From Mobula hypostoma (Eukaryota): 64,000 bases of DNA. This document shows, one piece after another, positions 1,003-63,706 of this stretch. The stretch covers positions 12,772,001 through 12,836,000 of the forward strand of contig NC_086109.1 in assembly GCF_963921235.1 (NCBI RefSeq), written 5' to 3'. The position numbers and the translations under genes were made by a program. The notes beneath the pieces are model-generated. The model saw only the letters and a list, made by a program, of their open reading frames with translations. It had not been told where the DNA came from and did not search any database. Position 1 is the stretch's first letter, and each line of letters starts with the position of its first letter.

Positions 1003-1323
1003 AACCTGTGTCTATTCCTTTGCTTCAATTTTCTCCACCATCAAGTGGCTCAAGTTGTGCGGACTCCGTGTCAGTGTCCTGTGAGTCTGTCCATGGATCC
1101 CTTCCCATTCAGTACTCATGGTACAAAAGGACCCCATCTGCGGATTCAAAGATCTCCGATAACAATAAACTGGATCTACATTGCCAACCATTAAAATACA
1201 AAAAAGATCTCTATTATTGCAAAGCCTCAAATGTTAATGGAACAAAGTCCAGTGAAATGGTCAATGTGTCCATCTCCAACAGTGTCAGTATCTGCAGATA
1301 TGTGATTGAAGTCAACAGCACGG
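1003..1323 (+). CDS. Gene A: C2-type Ig domain exon of a CD300/pIgR-like (MDIR-type) receptor
   Basis: ttttccacAG|AACCTG...ACGG|GTAAGT; 321 nt, phase 1-1. Encodes EPVSIPLL...SVSCES...YSWYK...LYYCKASN...ICRYVIEVNST with the Ig C-W-YYC pattern. Same length as paralogous exon 45678-45998. Confidence 0.9.
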
Positions 1324-1607
1324 GTAAGTGGTGCAGAGTTTGATTCTTTGTGATGGTTGATGGAGTACAACTGCATGACCGATGCCTGTTGGATATTGTG
1401 TTGTTGGATCTTCACTCAGGAGCATGGAGTGTATGTTGTCACCACCTTTCAGAGAATGAAAAACCTTTCAGCACAGCAGTTTAAACGTGAGTCGCTCACC
1501 ACACTGTCTCCTACCTCCGATCTGCTCTCACTGGTTGGGTGTGAATGTGTCTCGTCTGGTAATATTTCTAGCCATTAATTAACATAATCCTTCTAAGATA
1601 AACCACT

Positions 1608-2065
1608 TCAATGTTCAAAGTAAATTTATCATCAATGTACATATATGTCTTCATATTCTACCCTGAGATCCATTTTCTCGCAGGCATTCACAGTAGATAC
1701 AAATAAATACAATAGAATCAATGAAAAATTACACATAATCAAAGATGGACAAACAACCAAAAGAAGACAACCTGTGCAAATATAAAAGAAACAAATTATC
1801 AATAAGTAAATTAATAAAAAATACTGAAAACGTAAGTTGTAGAGTCCTTGAAAGTGAGTCCATTGGTTGCAGAATCAGTTCAGTGTTGAAATGAGTGAAG
1901 TTATCTAGGTTGGTTCAGTATCCTGATGGTTGAAAGGTAATAACTGTTTCTGACCCTGGTGCTGTGACACCTCCTTCCCAATGACAGCAGCGTGAAGAAA
2001 GCATGGCCTGGGTGGTCCATGATGATGGATGCTGCTTTCTCATGGCAGTGTTCCATGCAGACTTT
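1608..2065 (-). mobile_element. Rex1/Babar-type LINE 3' fragment
   Basis: Same sequence family as 28780-29612 and 39115-40010, whose minus strands encode Rex1-type RT C-terminal peptides. Confidence 0.6.
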
Positions 2066-3459
2066 TATCCATATTTGTTCTGCCTGAATTTATAAACAAT
2101 TATCTGTGCTGCATTTTATAGCAAATGGGCTGAGTCATCAAATCAAAGCAGTTGTATCTTGATGAAAAGTACAGAAATCACATGGATTGTGAATGTCTGT
2201 GTCCTGAAAGCCAACATATCTTTCCCCGCAGGTGGGATTGTGAGATATGACCTCAAAAAACTATGCATCCTAGTTCATTGAGTCTCCAAGCAAAAGTGTA
2301 GAGAGATGGAGCTCAAGTGAATTCTATGCTGAGCAGTTTCAAGGATAGAAACATTATTGAAGAGGGTAGGTTTATATTGGAACAAGTCAACCACTCAACC
2401 ACTGGGGCTTGGATTGTCTTATTTCCCCTGTTCAGCAAATTGAAAATACATGGGCAAAAAAATTAGTATTACTTAGACTGTGGCAATAACAGAAATGTAG
2501 ATAATTACCTGGATGGCAATAGAATAGAAAAGCGGGAAACGTAATGAGTTTTGGGTGTCCTTGTACATCTTTCACTGAAGGTAAACATGCAGATGCAGCA
2601 GGGCATAAAGAATGCAAATTAGATTTGGACTTTCAGAGAGAAGATTCAAGTAAAGGAAAAAGCATGAAACACTACAATGAAACAGGGCCTTTATCAGTTG
2701 GGAAAAAAGTTCCAAGTAACATTTTTTATCGAAGTATGTATACCATACACAACCTTGAAACTTGTCTCTTTACTGGCAGCCACAACACAAAGAAACCCAA
2801 TAGAACCTATCAAAAAAAGACCATCAAACACACAATGTGCCAAAAATAAACAAATCAATCAAACAATAATAGTAAGCAAATAACATTCAGAACTGAAGTT
2901 CATACAAGTGAGTCCCCAGCTATGAAGCCAGTCACTGGCAATCTCGGAGCCTGTCAGTTGCAGGCCGCAGCCTCAGCTCAGCGCAGGGATGAGTAAACTT
3001 TGCGGAGCAGTTAGCCTCACATCAGCCCGTCCCTCTTGTCCAGCCCTGACAGCCTGAACTTTTCAATCTGGCCCTGTGTTTAAGTCGGCCAACCAGAGCG
3101 TCATTCCTCACACTCACACTCAGGCCCTGCCATTCGATGCGCTCACATGCTCGGGACCTGCTGACTCGATTCGATCTGGCCCAAAGGTTAAATCAGTGAG
3201 ACATCAACTTGTTCCTCGCTCTCGACTACTAGAATTGTGTGCAGTTTTGGTCCAATGAAATATGTTCCTGTTATAGGTCAGCCGATCGTTCCTTGCTCTC
3301 TGACACGTGGCCCTGATGCTCCGGTATGCTCTCATGCCCAGGACCTAATGCCTCAATTAGGTCCGTACCAGACATTTCCAATCTGGCCCAGCACTAAAAT
3401 TGGTATCAGGCCATCAGTATTGTGTGCAATTTTGGTCCGATGAAAGATGTTCTTGTTTT

Positions 3460-4020
3460 GGATGGAGGCGAGCAAAGGACCAGCAGACTGATTTCTGGAA
3501 TGTCACAAGTGACAAAAGATCAGAGATTTAGTTGAAGAGGTTTTCACTTGCTGCAGTTTAGAAGGCTGAGAGGTGATTTCATAAAAATTTGCAATATTTT
3601 AGATACAGATTCAGGTTGGATGCTTCCAATGCCAGGGAATACAGGACAGTTTCCGGACTCTGAGAATAGTCTAATGGGTGAGTCATTTAAGACTGAGATT
3701 AGGAAAGGTCCCTTCTCCCAGAAAGTGGTGAATCTGTATTTCAGAAAGATTGAGTTATTTTTCTCAGAGGTAGAGAGATCAAAAGATATGGGAAACAGTT
3801 ACTCTCCCAGATATCTCCAGGTTCTAATATTCTACGTCCAGGAGAACTTAAAAAGTTGGGACAAGAAAAAAATTACTGGCCATTTCTAATTTCAATGGAC
3901 TAGGGGAAAGCTAACCACTCTATTTTAAAAAAGGAGCTAGAGAAAAAAGAGGAAATGATTGAGCAATTAGCCTGACACTGGTATTGAGAAACGTGATGAG
4001 GAAGGACAAATGGTAAAACC
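3460..4020 (+). mobile_element. Degenerate, rearranged CR1 ORF2 fragments
   Basis: ORF 3548-3889 (LQFRRLRGDFIKI...FKTEIRKGPFSQKVVNL) matches the C-terminus of CR1 ORF2 22201-25200. Confidence 0.7.
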
Positions 4021-4453
4021 AATGTATTGAATTGGTCTTGGGTTTCTTTGTGCCCATTATAAATTCCCCCATTTCTGTCTGTTAGCTATCCTATATATAT
4101 TTGTTTTAATTCCTCATCTCTCCATGTACCTATTGAAGGTTTCACATGAGTATATGTGTTCCCTACAAACCTGCTCACGTTCTAAATTTTCAATGATTTA
4201 ATCAATTTCTTTGTTTTGTTTTGAATTCTAAACTATTTCTAATATTCAGCTTTGCAGATTTGCTGAACATGATGCATTTCCTTGGATCTAATAGATTCAC
4301 TAATTTCTTTTGAAAGTCGTGCTTGATGGTCTTAAAAGCTCGAAGGGGATCTCTTTAATGCATGAAATATTCCCTGAGGGTGGATGGAGTTCATGTTGAA
4401 AAGGATGTTTCACAGGCTGCAGGGTCCAGAATGGGGACAATTCCAGGAGAATA

Positions 4454-7043
4454 TGTCATGGTCCGGTCTGTGAAGTCCGTATTCCGGTTCACGGTCCAGT
4501 CCATCGACCCTTGCTCCAGATTTTCCTATCCACCCTGTTTCTTTTCTTGTTGAGCTAATTTAGGCAGTTGATGCTAGTTGGGGCTGGCTGCATAAATACC
4601 TTCAGAGACCCAGGCATGGCTGCTGGATTGTTCTTGTCGTTACTCCTTGTATCCCTTGCTCTGCCTTCTGTTTCCTCGCCTGAAGTTCTTGTCTCGTCTT
4701 GGTTTGCCAGAAGCCTTGCCTTGTCTTGCCGGTAACTCTCACCTTGTCTTGCCTGCAGTCTTGTCCTAGAGGCACCCTGTACCTCACTCCCTTCCTGTCC
4801 TTTGCCTCCGCCCAGGTAAACCAGGCTGTCTTGCCGTTACCTGGGGATGGTTGTATCCCTTCCTGTCCCTTACCTCTGTCGGGTGGTTATCCACGCTCTG
4901 CCCAGGAGTACCGCGCCCTGCCAAACCTCGCCTCGCCTCAAGTCTCCTGCCTCCTGCCAAGCCTCGCATCGTCTCCTGCCTCCAGCCTCGCCTCGCCTCA
5001 AGTCTCCTGCCTCCTGCCAAGCCTCACCTCAAGACTCCTGCCTCCAGCCTCACCTCACCTCAAGACTCCTGCCTCCAGCCTCACCTCGCCTCAAGACTCC
5101 TGCCTCCAGCCTCACCTCACCTCAAGACTCCTGCCTCCAGCCTCACCTCGCCTCGACTCCTGCCTCCAGCCTCACCTCGCCTCAAGACTCCTGCCTCCAG
5201 CCTCACCTCACCTCAAGTCTCCTGTCTCCAGCCTTGCCTCGCCTCAAGTCTCCTGCCTCCAGCCTCCAGACTCGCCTTGTCTCAAGTCTCCTGCCTCCAG
5301 CCTCGCCTCGCCTCAAGTCTCCTGCCACCAGCCTCGCCTCTCCTCAAGTCTCCTGCCACCAGCCTCGCCTCTCCTCAAGTCTCCTGCCACCAGCCTCGCC
5401 TCTCCTCAAGTCTCCTGCCACCAGCCTCGCCTCTCCTCAAGTCTCCTGCCACCAGCCTCGCCTCTCCTCAAGTCTCCTGCCTCCAGCCTCCAGGCTCGCC
5501 TCGCCTCAAGTCTCCTGCCTCCAGCCTCACCTCTCCTCAAGTCTCCTGCCACCAGCCTCGCCTCTCCTCAAGTCTCCTGCCTCTAGCCTCGCCTCTCCTC
5601 AAATCTTCTGCCTCCGGCCTCGCCTATCCTCGAGACCCCTGCCTCCGGCCTCGCCTCGCCTCAAGTCTCCAGCCTCCGGCCTCGCCTCACCTCAAGTCTC
5701 CAGCCTCCGGCCTCGCCGCCAGCCCGAAGGCTCCAGCCTCCTGCCGGGCCGCCAGCCCGAAGGCTCCAGCCTCCTGCCTGGCCGCCAGCCCGAAGGCTCC
5801 AGCCTCCTGCCTGGCCGCCAGCCCGAAGGCTCCAGCCTCCTGCCTGGCCGCCAGCCCGAAGGCTCCAGCCTCCTGCCTGGCCGCCAGCCCGAAGGCTCCA
5901 GCCTCCTGCCTAGCCCCTTGCCAAGCCAAGTCTCTCGCCTCTCGCCTCATCAAGCCAAGCCTCTAGCCTCTAGCCAAGCCAAGCCGTCTCTAGCCTCTAG
6001 CCTCTTGCCAAGACAAGTCACTAGCCTCTAGCCTCTTGCCAAGCCATGCCAAGTCTCGAGCCTCTAGCCTCTAGCCTCTTGCCAAGCCAAGTCTCTAGCC
6101 TCTAGCCTCTTGCTAAGCCAAGTGTCTAGCCTCTAGCCTCTTGCCTAGCCAAGCCAAGTCTCTAGCCTCTAGCCTCTAGCCTCTAGCCAAGCCTAGTCTC
6201 TACCCAATCCAAGCCAAGTCTCTAGTCTCTAGTCTCTAGTCCCTAGTCTTTAGTCTCTAGCCAAGCCAAGCCAAGCCAAGTCGCTAGCCTCTAGCCTCTG
6301 GCCTCTGGCTTCTGGCCTTATAGCCTCTAGCCTCTTGCCAGGCCAAGTCTCTAGCCTCTAGCCTCTAGCCTCTAGCCTCTTGCCAGGCCAAGTCTCTAGC
6401 CTCTAGCCAAGTCTAGCCAAGTCTCTAGCCTCTAGTCTCTAGCTCAAGCCTGAAGATTCCAGCCTCCTGCCTAGCCCATTGCCAAGCCAAGCCAAGCCTC
6501 TGGTCTCTGGTCTCGAGTCAAGCCAAGCCTCTAGCCTCTAGCCAAGCCAAGCCTCTAGCCTCTAGCCAAGCCAAGTCTCTAGCCTCTAGTCTCTAGCCAA
6601 GCCAAGTCTCTAGCCTCTAGCCTCTTGCCAAGCCAAGTCGCTAGCTTCTAGCCTCTAGCCTCTCGCCTCTAGCCTCTAGCCAAGCCAAGTCTCTAGCCTC
6701 TAGCCTCTAGCCAAGCCAAGTCTCTAGCCTCTAGCCTCTAGCCAAGCCAAGCTTCTAGCCTCTTGCCAAGCCAAGTCGCTAGCCTCTAGCCTCTAGCCTC
6801 TCGCCTCTCGCCTCTCGCCTCTCGCCTGAAGATTCTAGCCTCATCCTGCCTGCCTGCCACGCCTCATCCTTGCCTAGTCCTGGGGTCCAAGCCAGAGGCA
6901 AGACCCAGGTACTGGGTCCTTGTCCAGTCTCTGGCTCGGAGTCCAAGCCCGGGCTCCAAGCTCTCTTATCCTAATCCTGTCCCTAGTACTTCAGTGTCTG
7001 TGTCTTGCACTTGGGTCCATTCCCAGCCACCCACCTTATGACA
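4454..7043 (+). mobile_element. Solo LTR (Gypsy/ERV-like) with expanded internal tandem repeats, in the C2-stalk intron of gene A
   Basis: Termini TGTCAT...ATGACA; 5-bp target-site duplication GAATA at 4449-4453 and 7044-7048; TATA-like CATAAATA at 4591. No gag/pol present. Strand assignment is tentative. Confidence 0.75.
4925..6840. repeat. Compound minisatellite inside the LTR
   Basis: About 22-26-nt units (cctcgcctcaagtctcctgcctccag) at about 4925-5715; about six 33-nt units (gccgccagcccgaaggctccagcctcctgcctg) at about 5716-5910; mosaic of ctagcct and ccaag units at about 5910-6840. Confidence 0.95.
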
Positions 7044-8557: not shown

Positions 8558-8636
8558 GGCCAATCCATTTCTGTGAAAATACTGGGACAGTATCTACAAC
8601 AAGTGCACAAAGGGGAGAACCTATTTCACATAAAAC
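8558..8636 (+). CDS. Gene A: stalk exon (GPIHFCENTGTVSTTSAQRGEPISHKT)
   Basis: ttttcttttaacAG|GG...AAAAC|GTAAAG; 79 nt, phase 1 to 2. Bridges the C2 exon (phase 1) and the TM exon (phase 2) in frame; Ser/Thr-rich. Confidence 0.8.
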
Positions 8637-9327: not shown

Positions 9328-9419
9328 GCCCACTTACATAAGTGTGCTCAGTGTTGTTGGAATTCTTCTCATACTACTTGTCGTTTGTCTACTTTGCTAC
9401 CTGAAGAGAAAAAGGAGGG
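9328..9419 (+). CDS. Gene A: transmembrane exon, no charged residue (PTYISVLSVVGILLILLVVCLLCYL-KRKRR)
   Basis: cttattctttaccacAG|G...AGGG|GTAGGT; 92 nt, phase 2 to 1. About 23 hydrophobic residues followed by the basic stop-transfer KRKRR. Confidence 0.9.
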
Positions 9420-10235: not shown

Positions 10236-11949
10236 TAATCTTGTGTCCTTTAAGTAGACTTTGTAAACCATTGAAGAGAACTGTGAGTACAGAGATCATC
10301 TCTGTGTTATTATCAGATGGGGAAATGGAGTTGATCACTGGAAAATAAAGCCCCTGCAGCCTCCAACTCACTGGCTGATGGAATATAACTCACTGGATGA
10401 AAATGAAGACAACTAATAATTCAACTGCTCCCCATGATTTAGTTTCTGGCCCCTCTCTCTCTCTCCCCAACAAACCAGACAGTTACTTTCAGCGTAGTAT
10501 TATCCTCAAGTCACTGCTTATTGCAACGATCTGAACAAAAGGAATGCATTCTTTTCCAAAGAGAGATTCCCTAAATGGTCAATACCTGAGGTATAGGCAG
10601 GAAAGTGCTAGGGATGCTCAGCATGTCAGATGGCAGCTGTGGAGAGAGGAACAGCTGATCCTTCAAGGCAATGAACTTACATCAGAACAGGAATATATGA
10701 GCGATAACAAGTCCTGAGGTGCAGAGGAAGTACGGAAGGAAGCATAAAAGAGAGGGTTTCTGAGGGAGTACAAGACAGAAAAAATACGTCAGGAAAGATG
10801 ATGTGTGAGGCAAAAGGTGGGTGGTAATAGGATAAATGAAGACTTAAAGATGGGCAGGCTTTGAAATTTGATATCTTCATTGGTGACATTATCCTCATCA
10901 GTAACAGAGTGTACTGCTCTTGATTTCCTTTGGCATTTCTCTTTCTATTGTTAACTATTAATTTAAAAATGGGAAGCAGGATTTGGGAAATAAAATCTGT
11001 TCACAATTCCACTTCCACTATTCTGCCCTCACTCAAGAGTTTTCCCCGTTTTCTTAAGGTAGGCAGATAGGTAAACTCCAGTCTAGGTGTAGTTGTAGTT
11101 TGAATGCAGTTCTGTTATTCAGCAACCCATTACAGTAAGCCAAGAGCTGAGAAAAAAAGTGTTTCTAGATGTTTTCACAAGAGATGGATTCAAATATTGA
11201 TTAAAATTCCTTTGCCTCGTCACAAAGTTTCATGGACAACTGAATGAGTAAATATGCAAGCAATTACAAAATGGCTGACCTGATGTCGTAGGTCATTTGC
11301 TTAGAAACACAGTAGTAAGAAATGAACAACTGCTGTAAACTTACAAGTAAGCAGTGATTTCTAGTGACTAGAAATAAAATGGCAAACCAAATCAGGGGGA
11401 ACATAACATTCACTAATAGTCTCAGGCCATAAAAACCTTTGATTGAAGATAGGGCATTTGGTTTCCATATGAAATTGTTGATCTCAGTGTTGAATTTGAA
11501 AGGAGATTTTGTGACCAGTAGGAAAGTGAGGTAATTTTTATTTTGGGCAGTTTGTTCCTTCTTCCCGAGGGACAATCTGCCACAGAGTCCTGGGGAGATC
11601 AGTGAAATGTTCATGGGACAGTGTGAATATTGTCAGGTAACCTGTTCCATCATATTGTGAAGAAGAAATATTATCTAAAAACATGCACAAACAATGTAGA
11701 AAATGTAGGTAGATCAGACAGAATTTGAAGCAATAAAAAGAAAAATGAAATTTCAAATCTGAATTCTTCATTACAATGTTCAAAGATAAAAAAAATGTCA
11801 GTTTGCAGTAGCAGAGAAGGTGAGGCATAAAACAACATGATCCTTTCTGAATATTGTGCAGTAACCAGAGCAGAGGTTTGCTCTGTGTGGAGAATCATTA
11901 TGGTGTTGCAGCCTGGGTTCCTGTGGTTCTGAGATTCAGTATGGGGGCC

Positions 11950-12257: not shown

Positions 12258-12311
12258 TGTTTATGTCTGTAACAACCATGCAATTTTTAGCAATAATGGT
12301 ATATTTTCCAG

Positions 12312-12358
12312 AATTCAAGCACAACGCATCTCACAGAGAAGGCAACAATGATACCCAG
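12312..12358 (+). CDS. Gene A: first cytoplasmic exon (EFKHNASHREGNNDTQ)
   Basis: tattttccAG|AA...CCCAG|GTATGG; 47 nt, phase 1 to 0, exactly the phase change needed between the TM exon and the terminal exon. Confidence 0.75.
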
Positions 12359-14370: not shown

Positions 14371-14577
14371 GAAATGGCCAGGTTGGATGAAAACATTGTT
14401 TATGCAGATCTACACCATGTTCAAAACAATGAGGCAGCTGCCCAGTCGGCTAACAATGAAAATGGAGTTGTGTATGCAAACATGAAATTTAAAAGGAAGT
14501 CACGAGCTGTTATGGATGAGGACAACACCACCTATGCAGATATCAAATTTCAAAGCCAACCCGCAAGGCCCAAATAG
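14371..14577 (+). CDS. Gene A: terminal cytoplasmic exon with ITIM, ITIM-like and ITSM-like motifs
   Basis: ttattatttcAG|GAAATG, phase 0, stop TAG 14575-14577. Motifs IVYADL (Tyr codon 14401), VVYANM (14473), TTYADI (14533). Confidence 0.9.
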   Translation, partial: EMARLDENIVYADLHHVQNNEAAAQSANNENGVVYANMKFKRKSRAVMDEDNTTYADIKFQSQPARPK

Positions 14578-22195: not shown

Positions 22196-22200
22196 AATGG

Positions 22201-25715: not shown

Positions 25716-25755
25716 ATGATGTGGAGTTCGATTCTTCTAATTGGTGTCCTACACG
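25716..25755 (+). CDS. Gene B: leader (signal peptide) exon MMWSSILLIGVLH
   Basis: aataaaATG context, 13 codons + G, donor GTGGGT; paralogous to 43167 and 63670. Confidence 0.75.
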
Positions 25756-27465
25756 GTGGGTGACAACCAGAGTGGGGTATTTTCATAATCTGCTTTGATT
25801 AGGGGGTCATTGATCATTTCCGGAACAGTGCATGAATATATGTAGACACTAAAGATGTCAGAATCTGGAGATAAAAGAAAATTTCTGGAGGAACTCAGCA
25901 GACCTAGCAGCAGCTGTAGGGGGAAGGGAACTGTTGATGGTTTGGGTCAAGACCCTGCATTGAACCTGAGTGGAGTGGAATAGGAGAGAGGGCATTGTGA
26001 AATAGAATCAGTTATCTGGACTACATCCCAAGGTTCTGAACGAAGTAGCTGGAGAGATTGTGGAAGCATTAGAAGTGATTTTTCAAATATGGTTCCTGAT
26101 GACTGGAAAATTACAAATGTCATTTATCTCTTTATAGGGGGAGGGAGACAAAATCAGGAAATTATAGATCAATCAGTTTAATTTCAGTGGTTGGTACATT
26201 TTTAGAATCTGTTATTAAGGATGGGATTTCGGAAAACTTGGGGCACATGATAAAATAGGCCTGATTCAACATGGTTTCCTTCAGGAGAAATCTACCCTCC
26301 CAAGTCCATTGAAATTATTTGAGCAAATAACAGGCAGGACAGACAAAGGAGACTTTGTTGATCAGTGCATTTAGTTTGCTCTGCCAAATGCCAAAATGGT
26401 CAACATACTTCATGCTATATTAGAGTTTCTCTCCATTTTCAAACTCTCATCATTCAGAACCTAACTTGACGAAAAACTCTCAAGGCAGCGGGAAATACTG
26501 TAAGGGAAGGCTGTCCAATGAGATTTGAGCTTGATGTTTCAGGCCATTGTAGATTGGAGGGAAACCTGCAAAGGACTGTCTTCACTCGTGAGGTACCATC
26601 AGACATCAACTTCACTGGTGAGTTGTCAGATGGATGGTTGACGGTACTGTGAGAGTCAGGGATTCCACTGATCCTCACACCCAAATGTCATCTGAAAAAA
26701 TGAAGGCTGGTGTTGCTTCAAGGATGAATGTAGCCATTACAGCTGGGAGTTCCCTTAATGAAACATCACTGAGTGATCTTTGTGTGCATTTGAGTAGTTG
26801 GAAGGCATCTGATTTGAAAGCAACATCTCTATTACTGCTGTACTTCAAAGTTCAAAGTAAATTTATTATCAAAGTACATTTATCATCATATACTGCCTTA
26901 AGTTTCATTTTCATGCGGGCATTCACAGCAGAACAAAGAAATATAACAGAATCAATGCAAAGATTACACACAAGCAAAAGACTGGTGGGGTGGCCTTTGC
27001 CTGTCATGGACTGGATTGATTCCACTATTCATGGAATATAGAAGATAGAACATTACACCAGAGTACAGGGTCTTTTACTCTCCTCTAAGATCAGTCTCAT
27101 CCTTCCCTTCTGTAACTCTCCTATTATCCATTTACCAATCTAAGAGTCTTTTAAATGTATCTGCCTCTGCAATCACTCCTGGCAAGGCCTTTCATGGACC
27201 CACCACTCTGTGTTAAGAACATACCTCTGAAACCCCCTCAATACTTTCCTCCAATAACCTTGAAATTATTCACCCACATAGTAGGCATTTCTTCCCTGGG
27301 AAAGTCTCTAGATATCTGCTCGATATGTGCCTCTGATCATCTTGTAAGTGTCTATCATGTTGTCTCTCACCCTCATTTGCTCCATTTTTTGAATTGTCTT
27401 CATATCCTCGAGAATGACGCTTTTACTTTCAGCTTGCTTAGAGGGAAATGGAGTTGTGTAGATGG

Positions 27466-27626
27466 AGAGAGAGGGTAAGAGGAGTTGTTCGAAAAGTGAT
27501 CACAATCGATTGCCCCTCTGCAACAGTAAATCAGTCACACACAACGTACTGCTGCTGTGGAATATTGGTCGTCAATATTCATTTTTAGTGGAAACAAATC
27601 GGCTGCATAGACAAGAAGGAAATATT
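27466..27626 (+). pseudogene. Gene B: frameshifted, 3'-truncated Ig V exon remnant
   Basis: VRGVVRKVITIDC...SHTTYCC, then in another frame RQYSFLVETN. Aligns to the N-terminal half of V exons 44551 and 49738; no second-half strands and no donor. Confidence 0.8.
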
Positions 27627-27744
27627 GCATGTATATTCAGTTTTATTAAAAAGATTGGCTTTTTATTTGTCACATGTCCATGAAAACATCGAAACATACA
27701 GCGAAGTGTATCTTCTGGTGTCAAATGAAGTTAGTGAAGACTGT

Positions 27745-33275: not shown

Positions 33276-34699
33276 TGTCTGGAAGAAAATGAATCTCAAG
33301 GGAGACAGACATATACATACTTTGAGAATAAATTTACCGTGAAGTTTCTCAACTGTGATAAGCTGAATGATTCCTGACCTCTCAAAACACATTTTATTGA
33401 AATGGAGTGAGAAAGAGCCACAGCACGAACATTTCCAGTCAATGTACAAAGGTCTTAAAGGAGAACAAGCAATGGAAATAAAAGTTAGGTGCTGAATAAA
33501 AAGAGTGAGCTGCAAATTTTTGCAGCTTGCATTGGTCATCAGGGTGTCAATCTTCAAACAGAAGGTATAACTTCTCTCAATGCTGATCTGTGACTGTAAC
33601 ACGTGAATGTACAATAAAGAGTCTTGAAAAGGAGAGAAGGTAAAGTATTTTTGCAGTTATAATCAGGGTAGTAGAGAGTGACATATATATACTTTGATAA
33701 GAAATTTAATTTGAATTTTGAACCTTGAAATGCCCCACTGACAATGTGGAATATCACATAATAAACTTCACCTGCTCTGTGAGGATGTGAAGCAGTAACG
33801 CCAGAGTCTGTTTGGAGCCCTTGATCTCTTCAGCTCAGAGTTATCTGATGAGTGTTGATTAGCTGCAGATAATTTCAGATGCAGTGTCCCACTTCTGAAC
33901 CTGGACCTGTTAAATCTGAGCTCATTAATGGTCTGAGGGAAAGAACTTGCTTTGTGTTTTTTCTCCGCTACAAAACATTTCACATCAGATTACAGTGAAA
34001 ATAAGGCTGATTCTGATTCTGAAAGAGAACTTTACTTGTCCTAGGACATCCCAAAGCCATTCTCAAAGGATATGGTAGAACTTCTGTGCTCTTTACTTGT
34101 CGTTCAAAACAGGATTCAAGGAAGTGCCAATGGATGCCTCATGTAAATAGACTGTTCCATCATCTCCTGCATTGCCTGTACTTCAGACCATAAGACAATG
34201 AGTCATCGGGGCATAAGAGGGCCATTCAGCCCATTGAGTTTGTTGCACCATTCTATAATGGCTCATTTATCATCCCCGTCAACAACATTCTCTCCATAAC
34301 TTTTGACACCCTTACTAAGCAAAAACCTATCAACCTCTGCTTTAAATATACCCAATGGCCTCCACCACCATCGGTGACTATTAATTCCATAGAATCATTG
34401 CTCTCTGGTCAGGGACTCTCCCACCAGAGGAAACAGCCTCTGCACGTACACTCCTCGGACACCCTCTCAATCCTTTCCTCCAATCACTTTGAAATTATTC
34501 CCCACACATTGGCAATTTCTGCCCTGAGATATTCTCTGGATCTCCGCTTGATCTGTGCCTCTGATCATCTTGTATATCTCTATCATGTTGTCTCTCACCC
34601 TCATTCGCTCCAATTCTGAATTGTCTTCAGATCCTCAAGAATTTTTGCATTCATTCAGTTTCCTTTTTGGTTAGAGAGAGATGGAGTTGTGGAGATCTA

Positions 34700-34856
34700 G
34701 AGATGGGATAAGAGGAGTTGTAGGAAAGGCGATCACAAATGATTGCTCCTATGCAACAGTAAATCAGTCACACACAATGTATTGGGGCCATGGAATATTG
34801 GTCAACAACATTCAGTTTTAGTGGAAACCAATGGGCTACATGGACGGGAAGAACAT
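34700..34856 (+). pseudogene. Second frameshifted, truncated Ig V exon remnant
   Basis: IRGVVGKAITNDCSY...SHTMYWGHG, then HSVLVETNGLHGR in a shifted frame. Truncated at the same point as 27466-27626 and followed by the same flanks; no leader upstream. Confidence 0.8.
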
Positions 34857-35406
34857 ATGGCATATATATATTCTGTTTTATTTTTAAAAATTAGCTTTTT
34901 ACATCAAAACATACAGTGAAATCCATCTTCTTGTGTCAAAAGAAATCAGTGACGACTGTGCTGGGATTAGGCTGGGTTAAATCGGTGGTTTACTGGGTGG
35001 TGTGGCTCATTGGGCCTAAAGAGCCTGTTCTGTGCTGAATCTCCAAATCAATAAATTCTGAGAACACGAGTTGTGGAGTCCTTGAAAGTGAGCCCATAGG
35101 TTGTGTGTAGTGATCAGTTCAGTGTTGAGTGAGTGAAGTTATCCATGCTGATTCAGGAGCCTGATCTTGACACTACAGTCTGTCAGTCACTGAAACGACG
35201 CATTAAAATGTGAATCCTCTGTCATATTAATCAAAGAAAATGACATCATCTTGCTCAGTGGTGAAAGATATACAACTAAAATAAGCACAAAATTGGTGTG
35301 TAGATAGCAGTTTTATTCCATGTTGAAACTTGCTGCATAGTAGTGACCTGTCACAGTTTTCAATGTAATGATGGCCTTTGGTCTTACTTATTCTCTTTCT
35401 CATCCA

Positions 35407-43166: not shown

Positions 43167-43206
43167 ATGCTGTGGACGTTGATTCTTCTGACTGGTTTCC
43201 TACCTG
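43167..43206 (+). CDS. Gene C: leader exon MLWTLILLTGFLP
   Basis: aataaaATG; 13 codons + G; consensus donor GTGAGT; joins in frame to VSGALWAE of the V exons. Confidence 0.85.
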
Positions 43207-44126: not shown

Positions 44127-44550
44127 TGGGAGCATCTTATGAAATAGCTGGGACCTCTGTGGACATTTCAAAGGCTGACATATTCTGAAGCAACTGAAAG
44201 TTGAACACTTTCATGGCCTCAAAAGCCGTGTATGGTATTGAATTCCATAGAGTCAACACCCTCTGGCTACACTACAGCTCTCCCCCAGTAGTGCACTGGA
44301 TGGTCAGCCCTGGGTCTCTGCTCAGGACTCTGGAGTGGGAAGTGAACTCACAATGTACTGACACAGGGGAGACAGCACTGACACAGCTGACACAGTAATA
44401 GCACTGACTGCACTTCACACCAGAATCATTGGCTGTGGTGTCATGGACCACATGCTGTACGTGACCTGCACCTGTTTTTACCGTCATGTTCAAAAATAAT
44501 TGTTGTATTAAATTGTTCCTTTCCCTCACATCTGACAATGCCTCCCTCAG

Positions 44551-44872
44551 TTTCAGGTGCATTGTGGGCAGAGAAATATGTAAAAGGAGCTGTGGGAAGA
44601 GCGATCACAATTGATTGTCACTATGAAGAAAAGTACCGCTCACACACAAAAGTATTGGTGCCATGGATGGACCGTCAGTTGTTCAGTTTCAGTGGAAACA
44701 AATGGGCAACACGGACGGAGTGGACGAGTGTCAATCACAGATAACCCGGAACGGAGAAAATTTACTGTTACTGTGGAGAATCTTCACCCTGGAGATTCAG
44801 GATGGTACAGCTGTGGAATTTCAACAACAGGTCCCGATTCGAGATTTAATTTAGAACTAAAAGTAAATGATG
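44551..44872 (+). CDS. Gene C: Ig V exon 1 (CD300/pIgR type), with a +1 frameshift at 44648-44651
   Basis: cctccctcAG|TTTCAGG...GATG|GTAGGT; 322 nt versus 321 for V2. IDCHY...KYWCHGWTVSC...DSGWYSCG is restored by removing one A. Confidence 0.85.
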
Positions 44873-45074
44873 GTAGGTTTCTCAGTGATTGATTTGTGCC
44901 TTCCATAAAATAAATGTCTCATGATCTTTGTCAGACACTGTCCATTCCTCACTATCTCTGCATTAATATCAGTACCAAATGTTTCCCTCTATACGGCAGG
45001 TCACTGAACCCAGTTACAATTTCATTCTCTCCTGAAAGCCACCAAACATGTGACAGATATCTCCCAAGTTGCTG

Positions 45075-45630
45075 CCTTTAAACCTCCTGTCATAATAGAG
45101 TGGCCACTGAGTGTATGTTCATGGTCTTTTGCTTTTGTGGCCCATCCACTTCGAGCTTTGACATGTTGTACCTTCAGATGCTCTTCAGCACACCGCTGTC
45201 ATAACCCACTGTTATTTGAATTCCTGTCACCTTTCTGTCGGCATGAACATGTCTGGCCATTCTCCTCTGACCTCTTTCATTAATAAAGCACTTTTGTTCA
45301 CAGAATTGCTGCTCTCTGGATGTTTTTTCATGTTGTTCGTACCATTCTCAGTAAACTCTAGAGACAGTTGTGTGTGAAAATCCCAGGAGGTTAGTAGTGC
45401 CTTAGATATTTACTACCCCGTCTGGCACCAGCAATAATTGCATGGTCAAAGGCACTTAGATCACATGACTTCTGCATTCTGATGTTTGGCCTGAACATTG
45501 ACTGAAACTCTTGAATATTTCTGCATGCTTTGATGAGTTGAGTTGCTGATGGTCTGATTGACTAATTAGATATTTGCATTAGTGATCAGGTTAATATTTG
45601 TACCTAATAAAGTGGCAGAAGAGTGTATGA
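45075..45630 (-). mobile_element. Tc1/mariner remnant in the V1-C2 intron
   Basis: Contains agagtggccactgagtgta and tgtacctaataaagtggc termini plus a degenerate transposase 5' region; same family as 14662-15559. Confidence 0.6.
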
Positions 45631-45677
45631 TATTTAGATGTTCATTCAGTGTCCGAATGTTTAATTCTTTCCCACAG

Positions 45678-45998
45678 AACGCGTGTCTGTTCCTGTGCTT
45701 CGATATCTGTCACCAGCAAATGTCTCACGTCTCAGCGGCTCAGTGTCACTTTCCTGTGAGTCTCTCCAGGGATCCCTTCCCATTCAATACAGATGGTATG
45801 AACAAACCTCATCTGTGCATCCGAACATCTCAAATACCAATGAACTGACTCTGCATTGTCAATCCTTCAATCACACACACCATCAATATTACTGTAGTGC
45901 CTCAAATTGGCTTGGAGCGAAATCCAGTGCAATGGTTAAAGTGACAGTCTTCAACAACGGAGAGATCTGCAGTTACGTGACAGAAATCAATGGCACTA
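45678..45998 (+). CDS. Gene C: C2-type Ig exon
   Basis: ctttcccacAG|AACGC...ACTA|GTAAGT; 321 nt, phase 1-1; SLSCES...YRWYE...YYCSASN...ICSYVTEINGT; paralog of 1003-1323. Confidence 0.9.
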
Positions 45999-46299
45999 GT
46001 AAGTTCTAATTTCAAGGGAGGATACATTTAAATATTTCTTTTTATTACTCTGTTACTGCTGCTCTTATACCTCGCGTGAGGGTAAGGAATTTCTTTGCAT
46101 TTGTGGAAGCTGCACATTGCAGCCTCCATGGGGTAGAACTAAAGTGCAGTGAACAGTTAAGTCTGTCACTTGCTCCTGGAAGATATGGAGCATCTCAAAC
46201 ATAGTTGGACTTGCGCATCTCAACAAATTGAGAGCATTCCATTAATACTTCTGGCTTTACATTGAAAAGTCCAGACTGGTATCGACTTCTGATTCTCAT

Positions 46300-47250
46300 A
46301 AAAGCAAAGGGAAGGACTTATAATATTGCAAATATTAGTGGGAATGACAGAAATTTGGCAATGGCAGGGGCAGAGATGAGTGTTGTTGCTATTACTAAGC
46401 AAAACGTGCTTGAGAAGCTGAGGGATCTGAAAGTAGATGAGTCATTTGGACTAGATGTACTACATCCCAAGTTACTGAAAGAGTTATTTAAAGAAATCGT
46501 GGAGGCATTAGTGGTGATCTTTCAAGAATAATTAGACTGGAATGTTCAAAGGATTGGAAAATTGGAAGTATCACCATACTCTTTAAGAAAGGAGGGAGGC
46601 GAAAGGAAGGAAATTGTCAACCAGTTAGCATGACTTTAGTAGTTGTGAAGATGTGGGAGTCTATTATTAAGAACAGGATTTTGGGGTACTTGGAGGTATA
46701 TGATCAAAAGTGGTTTCCTTATGGGGAAATCATCCTGAAAAATCAGCCTCAGAATGCAAGGGCGTCCCTTTATTTTATTTATTTACCGATAGAGTACAGA
46801 ATAGGCCCTTCCAGCCCTTTGGGTCACAACACCGAGTGAACTCTCGACAAACCCAATTAACTGTAACATAATCACAGGGCAATCTGCAAAGAGCAGTTAT
46901 CCTAATAAGTATGTCTTTGGACTGTGGGAGGAAACAGGACCACTCGGGGAGACCCTATACATTCCACATGGAAGATGTATAGACTCTGTACATTAGAACA
47001 GAGATGAGGAGGAATTTCTGTAACCAGAGGGTGTTGAATCTGTGGAATTCAATACCATACATGGCTTTTGAGGCCAAGACATTGAGTATATTTAAAGCGT
47101 ACTTAATAGTTTCTTGTTTAGGAAAGGCATCAAAAGATTACGGGGAGAAATGCCAAGGATGGAATTGAGTGGGATAATAAGTCAGCCTTGATGGAATAGT
47201 GGAGCAGACTGTATAGGCCAAATGGCCTAATTCTCCTCCTATGTCTAATG
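46300..47250 (+). mobile_element. Degenerate CR1 ORF2 and 3' fragments with an embedded SINE
   Basis: VLEKLRDLKVDES...LHPKLLKE...EIVEALVVIFQE; CR1-type tail at 47200-47250. Confidence 0.65.
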
Positions 47251-49313
47251 GTCTCATTGTCTTTGGTCGTCTCTAGCTTTTGAATATCTGAGCATCCCAG
47301 GTAAATTACCAACCGCTGAAACTGGGTTTTTGTTTGTTAAATAAAAAACCTCACTCACTTTGAGACATGAGAAGGAAATCCATTTCTTCTGTGAACAAGG
47401 CTGCTGCATTTCATGATTACAACAAGGATAACAAACTTTCAAGTCCCTTTTAATCACTAAAGGAATGTCATTCCAAGGTGAGGAATGGGCTGGTGTTCAG
47501 CTTTCTGCACAGCAAGGTTTACGTGTCTTTATGCTGAACTGAGGCTGTGGTTGGCAATTAATGGCCTCATTAATTGGCTACAGTGATGACTGGCTTCTTG
47601 GCTGTGGCCTCAGTTTTGTGAATTTCAGTTCCAAATGTTATTTGCTTACTTTGATTTCTCTTTCTTCTGTATATTGGGTGTTCTATTTTTTTTGTGATTG
47701 CCTGGAAGGAGGTGAATCTCAAGGTTGTATATGGTATAGATTCTTTGATAATAAGTATACTTTGAACTTTGATTTTTGAGATTGAAGTGCAATCTGATTG
47801 GCTGTGATCCCATAAGCTGTCACATCTATGCAATGAAATAGAATTCTGAATTTATCCTTTTAAAAGCATGTTCCAGTTTAGAGAGGATGCTGCAGAGTCA
47901 GGGAGTTATAGGTTATGGACACAGGAGTTTCACCCCAAATCATCCATGCAGACCACAGTATCTTCCTGAGCTTCTCCCATTTCATTGCATTTGTCTCGTA
48001 TCCTTCTAAAACTTGCCTATTAATGAGCTTGTCCAAATGTATTTTAAATAGTGTATTTGTAACCATCTCTAGTACTTCCTCTGGCAGCCTTTTCCACGCA
48101 CACACTGCTCTGTGTGTAAAGCAAGGCTGCTCCAGGCTCTCTAAGAATTTCCCCTCACTCCTTAAGCCGAGTGTCTCTAGTTTTCAACTCCCACACCCAG
48201 GATAAAGACTGTGATCATGCACCCTACCGTTGCCCACAAAACAAAGTAACACAATAGAATCCATGTAAAACCACACACAACAAAGACTGACAAAAAGCCA
48301 ATGTGCAAGCGATGATGAATCGTGCAAATAATAAAAATACGTAAACAAATAATACATAGAAGATGAGAGGCAGAGTCTCTGAAAGCGAGTCCGCAGCTAC
48401 AGAGTCAGTTCAGTGCTGAGGCGAGTGAAACTAATCCAGGAGCCTGATAGCTGCAGGACAACAACTGTTTATTATGAACCCTGTGGTGTGGGGCCCAAGA
48501 CTCCTGCACCTTCCACCTGATGGTAGGACCGAGAAGAGAGGGAGATGGGTCAAATGCAAGCGGACAATACAGGCTCAGGTGGGGAGGGGGCAGCTTGCTG
48601 GCACTGAGTAATGGGGCTGAACACCGGCTCATTTTCAAGATCCTCGTGTAAACTTACACAACTCTTTCCACTCTCCACCACACTGCAGTGTCACCCATAA
48701 CTTATTAATCATGCCACCTACATTTTCATTCCAAATTATTAATATTGACGACAAATAAGAGTGGTTAACAAATACAACACTGATCCTGATGGCACACCAC
48801 TGGTGATAAAGTCTGATGTTGTCAGAAAACCAACACTCCACTACCAGTCTGTATCCTTCCGTCAAGCCTATTCAATATCCATCCAGCTAGGTTACCATGT
48901 GATCTCACATTACAGATCAGTCTGCTATGCAAGGTACGGTCATAAGCCCTGCTAAACAAAACAGATAAACACTTAGGTCCTGTCCTCATCAGTTCCTTTG
49001 ATTATCTCTCAAAAAAAACTCAGTCAAATATTTTTGGGAGAGGATTTCCCATGCACAATATCATGTTGACTATCCCAAATCAGATCTTGCCTTTGTAAAT
49101 TCAAGGAGATCTTGTTTCACACAATTGCCTCCAGAAAGTTAACCCCCCACTGATCTTGTGCTCACCTGCCTGGAATGGGACTGGATCAGTAATCTATTGA
49201 CTCTGAAATGTGGAAACACACTGAGACATTATTGGGCAGTGATAATGATGACTCCAATCAAATAAGAATCGTTACTTGTGAAGAGGTGTGAGCACGAGAT
49301 GAGGGACGATGCT

Positions 49314-49468
49314 AGGGCCTCTGCCCCTTCCCTCTTCAGTCCTGACGAAGGGTTCCGGCCCGAAAAGTCAACTCATCGTTTCCACGGATGCTTCCTGACC
49401 TGCTGAGTTCCTCCAGCATGTTGTAAGTGTTGCTTTGATCCCAGCATCTGCAGATTATTTTGTGTTTT
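49314..49468 (+). mobile_element. PLE 3' insertion, sense to gene C, with a mutated hammerhead (49338-49373)
   Basis: CGATGCT at 49307-13 and 49469-75 (possible TSD). Motif AGUC-CUGACGA-A-GGGU(UCCG)GCCC-GAAA-AGUC-AACU, with two changes from the family consensus. Confidence 0.65.
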
Positions 49469-49737
49469 CGATGCTGTTATCTTCTCAGTCAATGTGGAAT
49501 TCAATTACACCAATTGACAGTGTAGCAGTTTCCTTAGGACACAGTGACAGTTTTAAATTAAATATCTTTATTATGATGATTGCATTTCTTATCTTTTGTG
49601 TCAGATTCAGTGTGATAATGATTTTGTACTCCTTTACACCTTTGTACAGGAAATGACATTGAAACCATCTAGAATCTTGAATCTCCCTGTGTTGATTTGA
49701 TTTTACCTGTGCATTTTCTGAGAAACTTCTCCCTCAG

Positions 49738-50058
49738 TTTCAGGTGCCTTATGGGCAGAAGATAAAGTAAGAGGAGTTGTGGGAAGAGCGATCACAATCG
49801 ATTGTCACTATGCACCAATGTACCGTTCACACACAAAGTATTTGTGCCGCATGTGGGGTCATCAATGCACATCGTCAGTGAATACAAATGGGGCAAATGA
49901 GCAGTATGGAAGAATGACAATCAGAGATAACACAACCCAGGGAATATTTACTGTAACTATGGAGAATCTTGTCTCTAATGATACAGGACATTACAGATGT
50001 GGAATTACAACATCTGGCAATCATCCAGTGTTTGACATGCATCTACAAGTATCTGACG
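49738..50058 (+). CDS. Gene C: Ig V exon 2 (intact, CD300/pIgR type)
   Basis: cttctccctcAG|TTTCAGG...GACG|GTAGGT; 321 nt, phase 1-1. IDCHY...KYLCRMWGHQC...DTGHYRCG, including the extra C-C' cysteine pair typical of CD300/pIgR/TREM V domains. Confidence 0.9.
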
Positions 50059-50929
50059 GTAGGTTTCTTTTTGATTGACTTGATGTCTCCAATGAAATGC
50101 CTGATTCATATTTTCTCTGGGAAGAGTCAGGGCGGCAGGAATATCCGGAGGCTCCACAGCAGTGCAGAGCCCTGCAGGGAGTAGACAAGGGTAAAGAAAC
50201 CCCGCTCATGTTGCTCTCACCCAGTGCAGGGTCTGACCCACTGATGGGACACCAATTTCCAATGGAAAGCTCAGCACATTTTCCTGCCTCCGAACTCCAT
50301 GAAATGTCACCCTGTCAGAGGAGGAGGTGTTTCCCATCCTGAGGCATATCAGTGTGGAAATATCACCTGGGCCTGCTAAGGTGTTCCCTCAGACCTGACG
50401 GGAGACACGTGCAGAAAATACCTGGTCCCTGACAGACATACTGAAACTATTCTTAGCAACCGGAGAGGTACCAGAGGATCGGAGAGTAGCCAATACTGTT
50501 CTGCTGTTTAAAAAAGGCTCTAAGCATAAATTAGGAAATTGTAGGGCAGTGAATCTCACATCTCACATCAGTTGCAGGAAAATTATTGGAATGTATTCTA
50601 ACTGAGCAGATAGATATATCATATTTGGATAGACATGGGCTGATTAAGAATAGTCAGCATGGCTTCGTGTGTGGTAGTACATGTCTAATCAAACTTATAG
50701 ATTTTATCGAGAAGGTTACCAGGAAAGTGGATAAAGGCAAGACAGTGGATGTTGTTTACGTAGACTATTAGCAAAGCATTTACCCTCTCCTAAACATCCA
50801 CATCCTTTCCACAGGGTTGCAAACAGAACTACATATTATTGTTTTCGATATGACCTATCCAAAGTTTTATGAAGCTACAAAATGCCTTGTCAGCTTTAGT
50901 CTCCAACATCAATTGAATTGAATTGAATT

Positions 50930-52982: not shown

Positions 52983-53019
52983 GACGTGAATATTCATTTA
53001 CAACAGTGTCATCTGCAAG
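52983..53019 (+). CDS. Gene C: short stalk exon (GREYSFTTVSSA)
   Basis: cattccttgactcaacAG|GA...GCAAG|GTAAAT; 37 nt, phase 1 to 2, joining V2 to the phase-2 TM exon in frame; Ser/Thr-rich. Confidence 0.65.
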
Positions 53020-56378: not shown

Positions 56379-56469
56379 TTTCATGATATGGAAGGTGGGC
56401 CGTTGGCTGCTCTTCGCTCTCCTGATGTTCAGCACGAGTTCAGTCCTGTGGTTCACAAGAGAAACTGAG
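56379..56469 (+). CDS. Gene C: transmembrane exon with Lys and Arg (FMIWKVGRWLLFALLMFSTSSVLWF-TRETE)
   Basis: ctcttcccctttgctcAG|T...GAG|GTAGGC; 91 nt, phase 2 to 0; hydrophobic segment with K and R three residues apart. Missed by the ORF track. Confidence 0.8.
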
Positions 56470-56668: not shown

Positions 56669-56710
56669 AGACGTGAAGAATCTGATCCTCACAGCACGGT
56701 GGTCCAGGAG
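56669..56710 (+). CDS. Gene C: short cytoplasmic exon (RREESDPHSTVVQE)
   Basis: cattgccttttccAG|AGA...GAG|GTAAAG; 42 nt, phase 0-0. Read-through gives VK-stop. Confidence 0.6.
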
Positions 56711-57196
56711 GTAAAGTGAAGACTCCCAGATTACACTGACTGTGCTGCAATTTTGCATCAAGAACAAATATTAGTTTTTCTGCCCACTTTGTGCTGTGAG
56801 AATTCAACTGCTGTCTCCGTGAAGATAAAAAATAACAAGACAATGTCGTCATCCTTCAAGGCAGTGACTTTGATTTTTGAATTCCTTCTCCAACATGTTA
56901 CCCTCAAGGATATCAATATAGTGGCAGTTTTCCCAATGCTTCCTTCATCACCACAGCTAAAAATTTAACCCTTACATACCTCTGAAATGATTAACACCCT
57001 TTTACATGGTTAAACTTTGTTCTATGGATTCAAATGCCCGCAGATGTTTTTTATTCTCATAACCAATCAATGCTAATCAATTAAGATGCTTCTTCATAAA
57101 CTGATATTATCAAGAAAGGGGTTTGTTTCAAACTGAAATGCATTTATGGGAAATAGATAACATTCAGGCTCCTGGACTTCCCTTTGTTGTCTGCAG

Positions 57197-57202
57197 CTGT
57201 GA
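57197..57202 (+). CDS. Gene C: candidate terminal coding segment (L-stop)
   Basis: ttccctttgttgtctgcAG|CTG TGA in phase 0; AATAAA at 57513. Weak evidence. Confidence 0.3.
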   Translation: M

Positions 57203-62375: not shown

Positions 62376-62459
62376 TCAAAAAAAAATCCCCTGCACTGGT
62401 GAAAACATACAGGGGGTGGGGTTGGGAACTATTCCACGCACATCCAAAATAACACTCAA

Positions 62460-62905: not shown

Positions 62906-63199
62906 GATCATGTCTTTTCTTTTCCTCAGTTAACTTTTTGCCATGAACCCTTTCCTCGATGACTTATCACAGCTGACATTTTAACTCAGGCAAGAAAAAA
63001 AGCTTCTGGAGGAACTTAGGGAGTCAGACAGCATCTGCAGATGCAGAGTGGTCAACATTTTGGATTAAGCCCCTGCTTCATGACACCTCCAGCAATTTAT
63101 TTTTGTGCCAGATTATAATATCTGCTGTTGCTAGTGCCTCACAATTTGATTTTTCTCATCATTTTTATCAGTCATTGGGAATTATCTTTTATTTTAGTA

Positions 63200-63535
63200 A
63201 ATATAATTATGAGCTTTTGATAATCTGGGTTGTTTTCTCAACCAACCTACTTTTTACATCCTCCTGGGTGACTGCCTCCTTCCCTTTCTCCAATGGTCCA
63301 CTTTCCTCTCCCATGAGATTCCTTTCTATCCAGCCCTATACCTTACCCACCCACTTGGCTTTACTGATCACCTCCCAGCTAGCTTGCATCCCCTTAACCC
63401 ACCTTTTTATTCTAGTGTCTTCCCCCTTCCTTTTCAGTCCTGATAAATGGTCTCGATCCGAAACATCGACTGCATGTTCATTTACATAGATGCTGCCTGA
63501 CCTGCTGAGTTCCTCCAGAACTTTCTGCGTGTTGC
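63200..63535 (+). mobile_element. PLE 3' fragment with a degenerate hammerhead, just upstream of the gene D promoter
   Basis: CT-rich UTR, then cagtc-ctgataa...-gaaacatc-gactg (63435-72; core mutated), then gacctgctgagttcctccag. Confidence 0.6.
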
Positions 63536-63572
63536 TTTTCATATGATCACACGTCAGCCTAAACTGGCTCAC

Positions 63573-63610
63573 TGTGGTTTCTGATCGGACTTCCTGCCCT
63601 CTTCTTCCTT
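63573..63610. promoter_or_regulatory. RUNX plus ETS composite upstream of the gene D leader
   Basis: TGTGGTTT 63573-80, GACTTCCTG 63588-96, TTCCTT 63605-10. Confidence 0.5.
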
Positions 63611-63669
63611 ATTTTCATTTGACAGTAATTTCTCTCTGTGAAGTGCTGACAGGCCTCGTGAATAAATCA

Positions 63670-63706
63670 ATGTGGAGTTCAATTCTTCTAATTACTTTCC
63701 TACCTG
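63670..63706 (+). CDS. Gene D: leader exon MWSSILLITFLP (rest of the gene beyond the window)
   Basis: 12 codons + G, donor GTGAGT; intron start (tagacactaaatatgtcagaatctggag) is paralogous to genes B and C. Confidence 0.85.

Follow-up and report, generated by a model that had tools for sequence, protein, structure and literature searches.

In this study, we analysed a cluster of immunoglobulin (Ig)-like receptor genes in a 64-kb stretch of Mobula hypostoma DNA (contig NC_086109.1, positions 12,772,001 to 12,836,000; hereafter the window), a piece of AT-rich vertebrate sequence without gaps and with fragments of long interspersed nuclear elements (LINEs) throughout. It holds, in tandem and all on the plus strand, the 3′ half of gene A, a relic termed gene B, gene C, and the leader of gene D (Table 1). 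A tblastn search with the obvious Ig-like open reading frames (ORFs) returned two C2-type exons (near 1003 and 45678), full V-type exons near 44551 and 49738, and V fragments near 27.5 and 34.7 kb, every match being on the plus strand. The exons are modular, with one Ig domain per exon in phase 1, and all junctions are of the AG/GT type. We consider the window probably to be part of a tandem cluster of ray MDIRs (modular domain immune-type receptors) belonging to the paired type, with an inhibitory gene A, a dead gene B, a gene C whose transmembrane (TM) segment bears an arginine, and the start of gene D. A preliminary description of this DNA had placed all genes on one strand with exact phase compatibility, which holds for the strand and for every phase other than that of gene C V1, an exon of 322 nt. 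It had also derived the neighbouring genes from one C2 exon family, in line with the 50% protein identity between the C2 exons of genes A and C, and had announced a pseudogene between these two genes and a fourth leader; the former is recognisable from a leader relic and two truncated V halves, and the latter lies at the exact end of the region described.

Table 1 Exons and exon remnants of the four receptor genes in the window
Feature	Position	Strand	Characteristics and evidence
Gene A membrane-proximal C2 Ig exon	1003..1323	+	321 nt, phase 1 to 1; Pfam Ig_3/Ig_2; FCRL5-like in PDB
Gene A stalk exon GPIHFCENTGTVSTTSAQRGEPISHK	8558..8636	+	79 nt, phase 1 to 2; matched in tblastn with the relatives P0012, P0003, P0004
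Gene A TM exon PTYISVLSVVGILLILLVVCLLCYLKRKRR	9328..9419	+	Uncharged helix, then KRKRR stop-transfer; phase 2 to 1
Inverted scrap of gene A tail exon	10857..10938	-	blastn 84% over 51 nt; tblastn P0004 552-578
Gene A cytoplasmic exon 1 EFKHNASHREGNNDTQ	12312..12358	+	47 nt; short-query tblastn to P0004 KHNISHRGGNNETQ
Gene A last coding exon	14371..14574	+	IVYADL, VVYANM, TTYADI; stop codon 14572-14574
Gene B leader relic MMWSSILLIGVLH	25716..25755	+	Donor GTGGGT; blastn 75-78% to gene C and D leaders
Gene B truncated 5′ half of V exon	27463..27629	+	In-frame stop, without F-G strands; tblastn, alignment
Gene B second truncated V half	34687..34862	+	tblastn, alignment, translation
Gene C leader exon MLWTLILLTGFLP plus 1 base	43167..43206	+	tblastn P0029, P0020
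Gene C V1 exon, pIgR/CD300-type V-set	44551..44872	+	322 nt; Pfam V-set; two-frame tblastn matches
Gene C C2 exon	45678..45998	+	321 nt; Pfam Ig_3 above cut-off; 79-88% identical to relatives
Gene C V2 exon	49738..50058	+	321 nt; Pfam V-set 1.3e-10; PDB pIgR and CD300 matches
Gene C stalk exon GREYSFTTVSSA	52983..53019	+	37 nt, phase 1 to 2
Gene C TM exon (S)FMIWKVGRWLLFALLMFSTSSVLWFTRETE	56379..56469	+	Family-invariant Arg-Trp; tblastn 77-81% to relatives
Gene C last coding exon RREESDPHSTVVQEVK then stop	56669..56719	+	16-residue tail, no tyrosine; matches P0034 tail RRDESNPHSLVVQEVK
Gene D leader exon MWSSILLITFLP plus 1 base	63670..63706	+	Donor GTGAGT; blastn to other leaders; tblastn P0005

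The part of gene A within the window is intact, with five open exons. Its C2 domain is 89% identical to M. birostris XP_072134917 and 81% identical to the fourth domain of Hemitrygon akajei XP_072886821; its Pfam score is sub-threshold (1.8e-4). A direct splice from C2 to TM was rejected, since C2 ends in phase 1 and TM requires phase 2; a stalk exon was therefore sought, and the one located via relatives corrects the phase. The TM segment has the top hydropathy of the window (3.24) and is 92% identical to that of the relative P0004. By the usual consensus, the first tyrosine motif of the tail (IVYADL) is an immunoreceptor tyrosine-based inhibitory motif (ITIM), the second (VVYANM) is ITIM-like, with Met at +3, and the third (TTYADI) is an immunoreceptor tyrosine-based switch motif (ITSM). 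This tail is 94% identical to that of M. birostris XP_072134917 (P0161), and the stop codon is common to both. When spliced, gene A reads ...EVNSTGPIHFCEN...SHKTPTYISVLSVVGILLILLVVCLLCYLKRKRREFKHNASHREGNNDTQEMARLDENIVYADL...VVYANM...TTYADIKFQSQPARPK, every acceptor being AG and every donor GT. The uncharged TM with three tyrosine motifs that had been reported for this gene is thus confirmed.

Two further features lie in the introns of gene A. The C2-to-stalk intron contains a GC-rich minisatellite (4926-6842; periods of 31, 33 and 7 nt) that gives rise to spurious Pro/Ser-rich ORFs of 295-394 aa. Such ORFs at 4699-6031 were evaluated as a mucin stalk and rejected, being minisatellite, open in all frames and without homologue support. 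Closer to the tail, a fragment of the ITSM-bearing tail exon lies inverted inside gene A's own intron (Table 1), a scar of local rearrangement.

Gene C is laid out as leader, V1, C2, V2, stalk, TM and tail, with phases 1, 1, 1, 1, 1 to 2, 2 to 0, and 0. Its V2 is 92% identical to that of H. akajei XP_072886585 (P0034). A direct splice from V2 to TM is out of phase and was rejected, which led to the 37-nt stalk exon; the clue was XP_072886585, in which the last V domain and the TM segment are separated by a peptide identical to that of the exon. The TM segment of gene C reads SFMIWKVGRWLLF... and contains WKVGRWLLF.

RNA contigs from four runs were aligned over one 6-kb stretch of the window (44450-50400), and bear out two of the joints whose use in transcripts the preliminary description had left to be checked. 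A GT..AG joint from 44872 to 45678, connecting V1 to C2 of gene C, occurs in three runs, and one from 45998 to 49738, connecting C2 to V2, in two runs, with a variant form in two runs. RNA depth falls on the three Ig exons, with essentially none over unique intron. The V2 acceptor used in RNA is 49738, 6 nt upstream of the obvious site, and by analogy we place that of V1 at 44551; the upstream acceptor adds Ile-Ser (Val-Ser after the leader), as in most annotated relatives. Both V exons carry tandem acceptors 6 nt apart (cag/tttcag/, at 44545-44557 and 49732-49744), and annotated relatives show both forms (LPVSGALW... and LPGALR...), so this two-residue alternative at domain junctions seems to be a feature of the family. 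Further contigs, 1358-1687 nt long, agree at about 95-96% with the final 100-119 nt of V2 (49960-50059), the match ending at the V2 donor, and run on for 1.2-1.6 kb beyond the aligned stretch; they are probably the transcript of a paralogue from V2 to the 3′ untranslated region.

With respect to domain type, Pfam assigns the V exons to the V-set (1e-10 and 1e-9), and we judged the placement of the V domains by graded PDB E-values. V2 matches multi-domain pIgR chains down to 1.7e-45, CLM-1/CD300f at 1.3e-14 and single pIgR D1 chains at about 1e-12 to 1e-10, with FcmuR, NKp44, TIM and TREM steadily weaker. pIgR D1 and CD300 are therefore the closest matches in the PDB search, and the V domains do not fall outside the CD300/pIgR/MDIR clade to which they had been provisionally assigned. 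The C2 exon matches FCRL5 at 8e-31 over five domains, the next match standing at 4e-6, and an exhaustive HMMER search with the C2 of gene A gave 17 matches below 1e-30. The closest RefSeq names are "polymeric immunoglobulin receptor-like", "Fc receptor-like protein 5" and "CMRF35-like", in relatives from H. akajei, Hypanus sabinus, M. birostris, M. hypostoma, Rhinoraja, Mustelus and others; by sequence comparison, the nearest proteins are those of devil rays and stingrays. The same junction-spanning peptides are carried by RefSeq proteins of Hemitrygon, Hypanus, Mobula, Rhinoraja and Mustelus. The preliminary description had held the TM and tail exons to be invisible to ORF-based annotation; modern annotation does not miss them, as RefSeq models of the Mobula, Hemitrygon and Hypanus relatives include them.

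The same search family contained "Modular domain immune-type receptor 5" and "2" of the clearnose skate, to which the V and C2 exons of the window are homologous (45-75% identity per domain; E 1e-13 to 1e-41), so that MDIR had been aptly named as a comparator family. Skate MDIR5 (Rostroraja eglanteria, P0170) has the module build of these genes, L-V-C2-V-C2-stalk-TM-tail, and is 57-75% identical per domain to the exons of gene C, with which it also shares the stalk type G-H/R-EYSCE, the TM motif SWKVGRWLLF and a short acidic tail (KKRDESEP). Unlike MDIR5, gene C is without a second C2 (V-C2-V), as are H. akajei XP_072886585 and P0152, and its V1 is frameshifted in this assembly. MDIR2 (P0199), M. 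birostris XP_072134917 and H. akajei XP_072886821 resemble gene A in their uncharged TM and in a juxtamembrane R-ESK-..-NETQ exon, and MDIR2 and the inhibitory pIgR-like forms of rays share the repeated tail motifs (I/V/T)xYAx(L/V/I). MDIR2 consists of V-C2 only and has a fourth, C-terminal motif, IYASV, before which gene A and its Mobula counterpart end. MDIRs are characterised by one to six domains drawn from a few Ig subfamilies; the architectures of the relatives here extend from C alone to V-C-V-C-V-C, and one predicted protein has 11 domains. Four subtypes of domain can be told apart by position (V1, C2-1, V2 and C2-2), with 74-81% identity at the same position and 46-56% at the other position.

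These genes thus combine Ig homology, a modular ectodomain, ITIM and charged-TM forms, and a distant similarity to CD300, pIgR, TREM, NKp44 and FcR, as MDIRs do, and differ from each of the better-known families in build. CD300 has V domains of the same subtype and, as is established, ITIM and charged-TM partners within one cluster; however, its members have a single V on a mucin-like stalk and no C2, and its activating members carry a TM Lys or Glu, whereas here V alternates with C2. pIgR, whose V domains are again of this subtype, consists of V-type domains only and has a long transcytosis tail, whereas the ray genes include C2 exons and have tails that are either ITIM-type or 16 residues long; neither pIgR nor CD300 alternates V with FCRL-like C2. 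Finally, FCRL5 is the specific match of the C2 exons, but FCRL ectodomains are C2-only, whereas the ray genes alternate C2 with pIgR-like V, the V exons standing in the same transcripts with their joints observed in RNA. The locus is a further example of a family known since 2006 (Cannon et al., clearnose skate), with relatives already annotated in public genomes, and will not surprise comparative immunologists familiar with the MDIR work. MDIR5 is known as cDNA, whereas genomic exon structure and neighbours are visible at this locus. For a family known mainly from skate cDNAs, it thus provides genomic anatomy at base level: the exon modules, their phases and a pair of 3′ cassettes that are interchangeable.

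The character of the two cassettes was surveyed by a motif-free phmmer search with the stalk, TM and tail of gene C, which gave 40 homologous anchors from rays, skates and sharks, or 41 with gene C itself. Arg and the Trp that follows it are invariant in all 41. The preceding Trp is present in 40 of 41 and the Lys in 24 of 41, its place being otherwise taken by T, D, N and others. The TM of gene C had been described as containing both Lys and Arg, followed by a tyrosine-free tail; residues and tail are all present, but only the Arg is conserved family-wide, the Lys being variable. From sharks to rays, the tails of such Arg-TM forms keep the motif (D/N)-E-S-(D/E)-P-(H) (P0034, P0170, P0160, P0174), which may point to a cytoplasmic function beyond adaptor coupling. 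A region-restricted search for the cassette outside the family yielded only 14 candidates, all of them family members, and is therefore uninformative.

Both kinds of anchor occur on the same builds, Arg-TM and ITIM forms numbering 9 versus 8 for V-C-V-C, 5 versus 17 for V-C and 2 versus 3 for V-C-V. Moreover, an inhibitory H. akajei protein shares 74-81%, 79% and 79% identity over its domains 1-3 with V1, C2 and V2 of gene C, and the V2 of gene C is 90% identical to that of an inhibitory M. birostris protein. Two anchors on shared builds, together with an ectodomain about 80-90% like the first three domains of inhibitory relatives, point to a paired-receptor family, and the two genes of the window have the features of the two classes: ITIM with an uncharged TM in gene A, and a charged TM with a short tyrosine-free tail in gene C. 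The proposed tandem array of receptors of opposite type accordingly finds its counterpart in one same-strand cluster, where a gene with an ITIM/ITSM tail, a copy in decay and a charged-TM, short-tail gene stand together.

How such receptors might work can be outlined from these parts. The modules are two pIgR/CD300-like V subtypes and two FCRL5-like C2 subtypes, and downstream of them stands either of two 3′ cassettes. Phosphorylation of the tail tyrosines of gene A would, by analogy with other ITIM receptors, recruit SHP-1, SHP-2 or SHIP and damp signalling. The cassette of gene C comprises a short stalk, a TM segment with an outer Arg-Trp and a 16-residue tyrosine-free tail with ESDPH; its invariant Arg would most likely bind to an acidic residue in the TM segment of an adaptor carrying an immunoreceptor tyrosine-based activation motif (FcR-gamma-, DAP12- or CD3-zeta-like), and receptors of this type would then signal activation through ectodomains that share some 80-90% identity with the inhibitory ones. 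The FcR-gamma-coupled receptors FcalphaRI, LILRA, OSCAR, NKp46 and GPVI likewise combine a short tail with an Arg located in the outer third of their TM. They resemble gene C in that the tail is free of signalling motifs and that one conserved Arg lies a few residues inside the TM from its outer end, but they show no anchor sequence homology to it, and their ectodomains are unrelated, of the C2-only leukocyte receptor complex type. By this analogy, and judged from the anchor only, the role of gene C-type receptors would most likely be activating.

A more tentative proposal, which we rate as less likely than not, is that the Arg-Trp TM and ESDPH tail exons may have been an elasmobranch-wide adaptor-coupling cassette since the split of sharks and rays, and that the V/C2 chains would be living examples of a mixed ancestor. 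Such a mixed V and C2 ancestor was put forward by a 2014 survey as one of two possible origins of the pIgR and FcRL lineages, and the same survey reported homologues of pIgR, FcRL and FcR-gamma to be absent from cartilaginous fish (PMC4016189). If our proposal is true, MDIR5-type receptors, described as motif-less, would become the activating arm of the family, and an FcR-gamma- or DAP12-like partner is implied in cartilaginous fish, where that survey reported none. Ray, skate and shark proteins that mix pIgR-like V with FCRL5-like C2 suggest that its statement of absence (PMC4016189) merits review with current genomes. The cassette and the V/C2 mosaic would thus bear on the timing of adaptor-coupled activating receptors and of the pIgR and FcRL lineages, and the invariance of Arg-Trp makes it testable whether adaptor-coupled activating receptors paired with ITIM receptors existed already in cartilaginous fish.

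Several observations weigh against a working inhibitory and activating pair at this site. The upstream exons of gene A lie outside the window, and all of its junctions, as well as those joining stalk, TM and tail in gene C, are predicted from homology and splice logic. V1 of gene C carries a +1 frameshift, with AAAA at 44648-44651 where the sister V2 exon has AAA, so that translation as assembled ends after 77 codons, although both halves of V1 are otherwise open. Its anchor is off consensus at three near-invariant positions (Ile to Phe, Ile to Ser, Lys to Glu), the last making Glu the first tail-side residue, which is Lys in 35 of 41 anchors; these departures may reflect relaxed constraint. 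Gene B is clearly dead, gene C may likewise be a decaying copy or pseudogene, and no protein among the database search matches was flagged as encoded by the window, which would fit public pseudogene annotation. Taken together, these points make it a serious contender, if short of probable, that there is no working receptor gene here in this individual, gene C and possibly gene A being transcribed pseudogenes with functional pairs elsewhere. Save for one base, however, seven exons of gene C and five of gene A are open with intact splice sites, skipping of V1 in the gene C model would leave an intact 286-residue L-C2-V2-TM protein, and the tail of gene A keeps its close identity and shared stop with an annotated M. 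birostris protein. Two RNA contigs cross the A-run without the extra A, which would restore the frame and could mean an assembly or individual-specific indel, and in a run labelled as this species the V1-to-C2 junction occurs with 0 mismatches in V1. One of the two A-run contigs, though, diverges to paralogue-like sequence 24 nt onward, and most RNA contigs, being only 95-99% alike, may stem from paralogues or a sister species; at the A-run, the contigs therefore fit both a real lesion of this copy and an assembly or individual indel.

A different challenge concerns the anchor itself. Within the same MDIR cluster, the Arg-TM forms might not couple to adaptors at all, serving instead as signalling-neutral decoys or co-receptors or acting through their acidic ESDPH tail in sorting or endocytosis, in that a tail motif kept in both sharks and rays suggests that the tail has its own cytoplasmic function. 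The Arg is situated close to the outer limit of the hydrophobic segment and could be flanking rather than buried: only about 17 hydrophobic residues follow it and polar Lys/Gly precede it, which leaves its depth in the bilayer uncertain. Nevertheless, 17 residues would be too few to span the bilayer, placing the Arg-bearing turn probably inside, and the invariance of an exoplasmic Arg-Trp in every anchor of the survey runs contrary to the positive-inside rule and implies selection. In addition, the combination of short tail and outer-third Arg is typical of FcR-gamma-coupled receptors, and the existence of the same ectodomain builds with ITIM tails is a hallmark of paired families. Earlier work points the other way, in that the abstract of the 2006 MDIR paper reportedly put MDIR5 among the forms without activating or inhibitory motifs. 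The 2014 survey, the only literature on FcR-gamma or DAP12 in sharks that we found, reports no FcR-gamma chain in cartilaginous fish, judged on the data available in 2014 (PMC4016189). On balance, we regard a non-coupling anchor as somewhat unlikely. An origin of the Ig-like exons as chance ORFs or from repeats would be conceivable in a window rich in LINEs and minisatellites, which are sources of long spurious ORFs, but Pfam, PDB and protein matches down to 1e-194, conserved phases and the RNA junctions refute it for practical purposes.

The remaining features illustrate how such a cluster turns over. Gene B died and its stump underwent a later duplication: its two V halves have a small insertion, the in-frame stop and the truncation point in common. 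Gene D is represented by an intact leader, with the remainder of the gene past the window end. Dead copies, duplicated exon stumps and frameshifts are thus visible within 64 kb, and the earlier portrayal of a birth-and-death locus agrees well with the dead gene B, its duplicated truncated V, the inverted tail scrap, the LINE insertions and the V1 frameshift. As birth-and-death evolution predicts, the window may be a decaying edge of the cluster. Between genes A and B, on the plus strand, lies an apparently intact CR1-type LINE (21734-25200), of which ORF1 has a GDSL-esterase domain and ORF2, of 999 aa, has endonuclease and reverse transcriptase domains. Lastly, a segment at 33409-33492 (plus strand) shows 75% identity to the last 28 residues, at the C terminus, of M. 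hypostoma XP_062921369 (P0008), and is probably the counterpart of a repeat-derived alternative terminal exon in that model.

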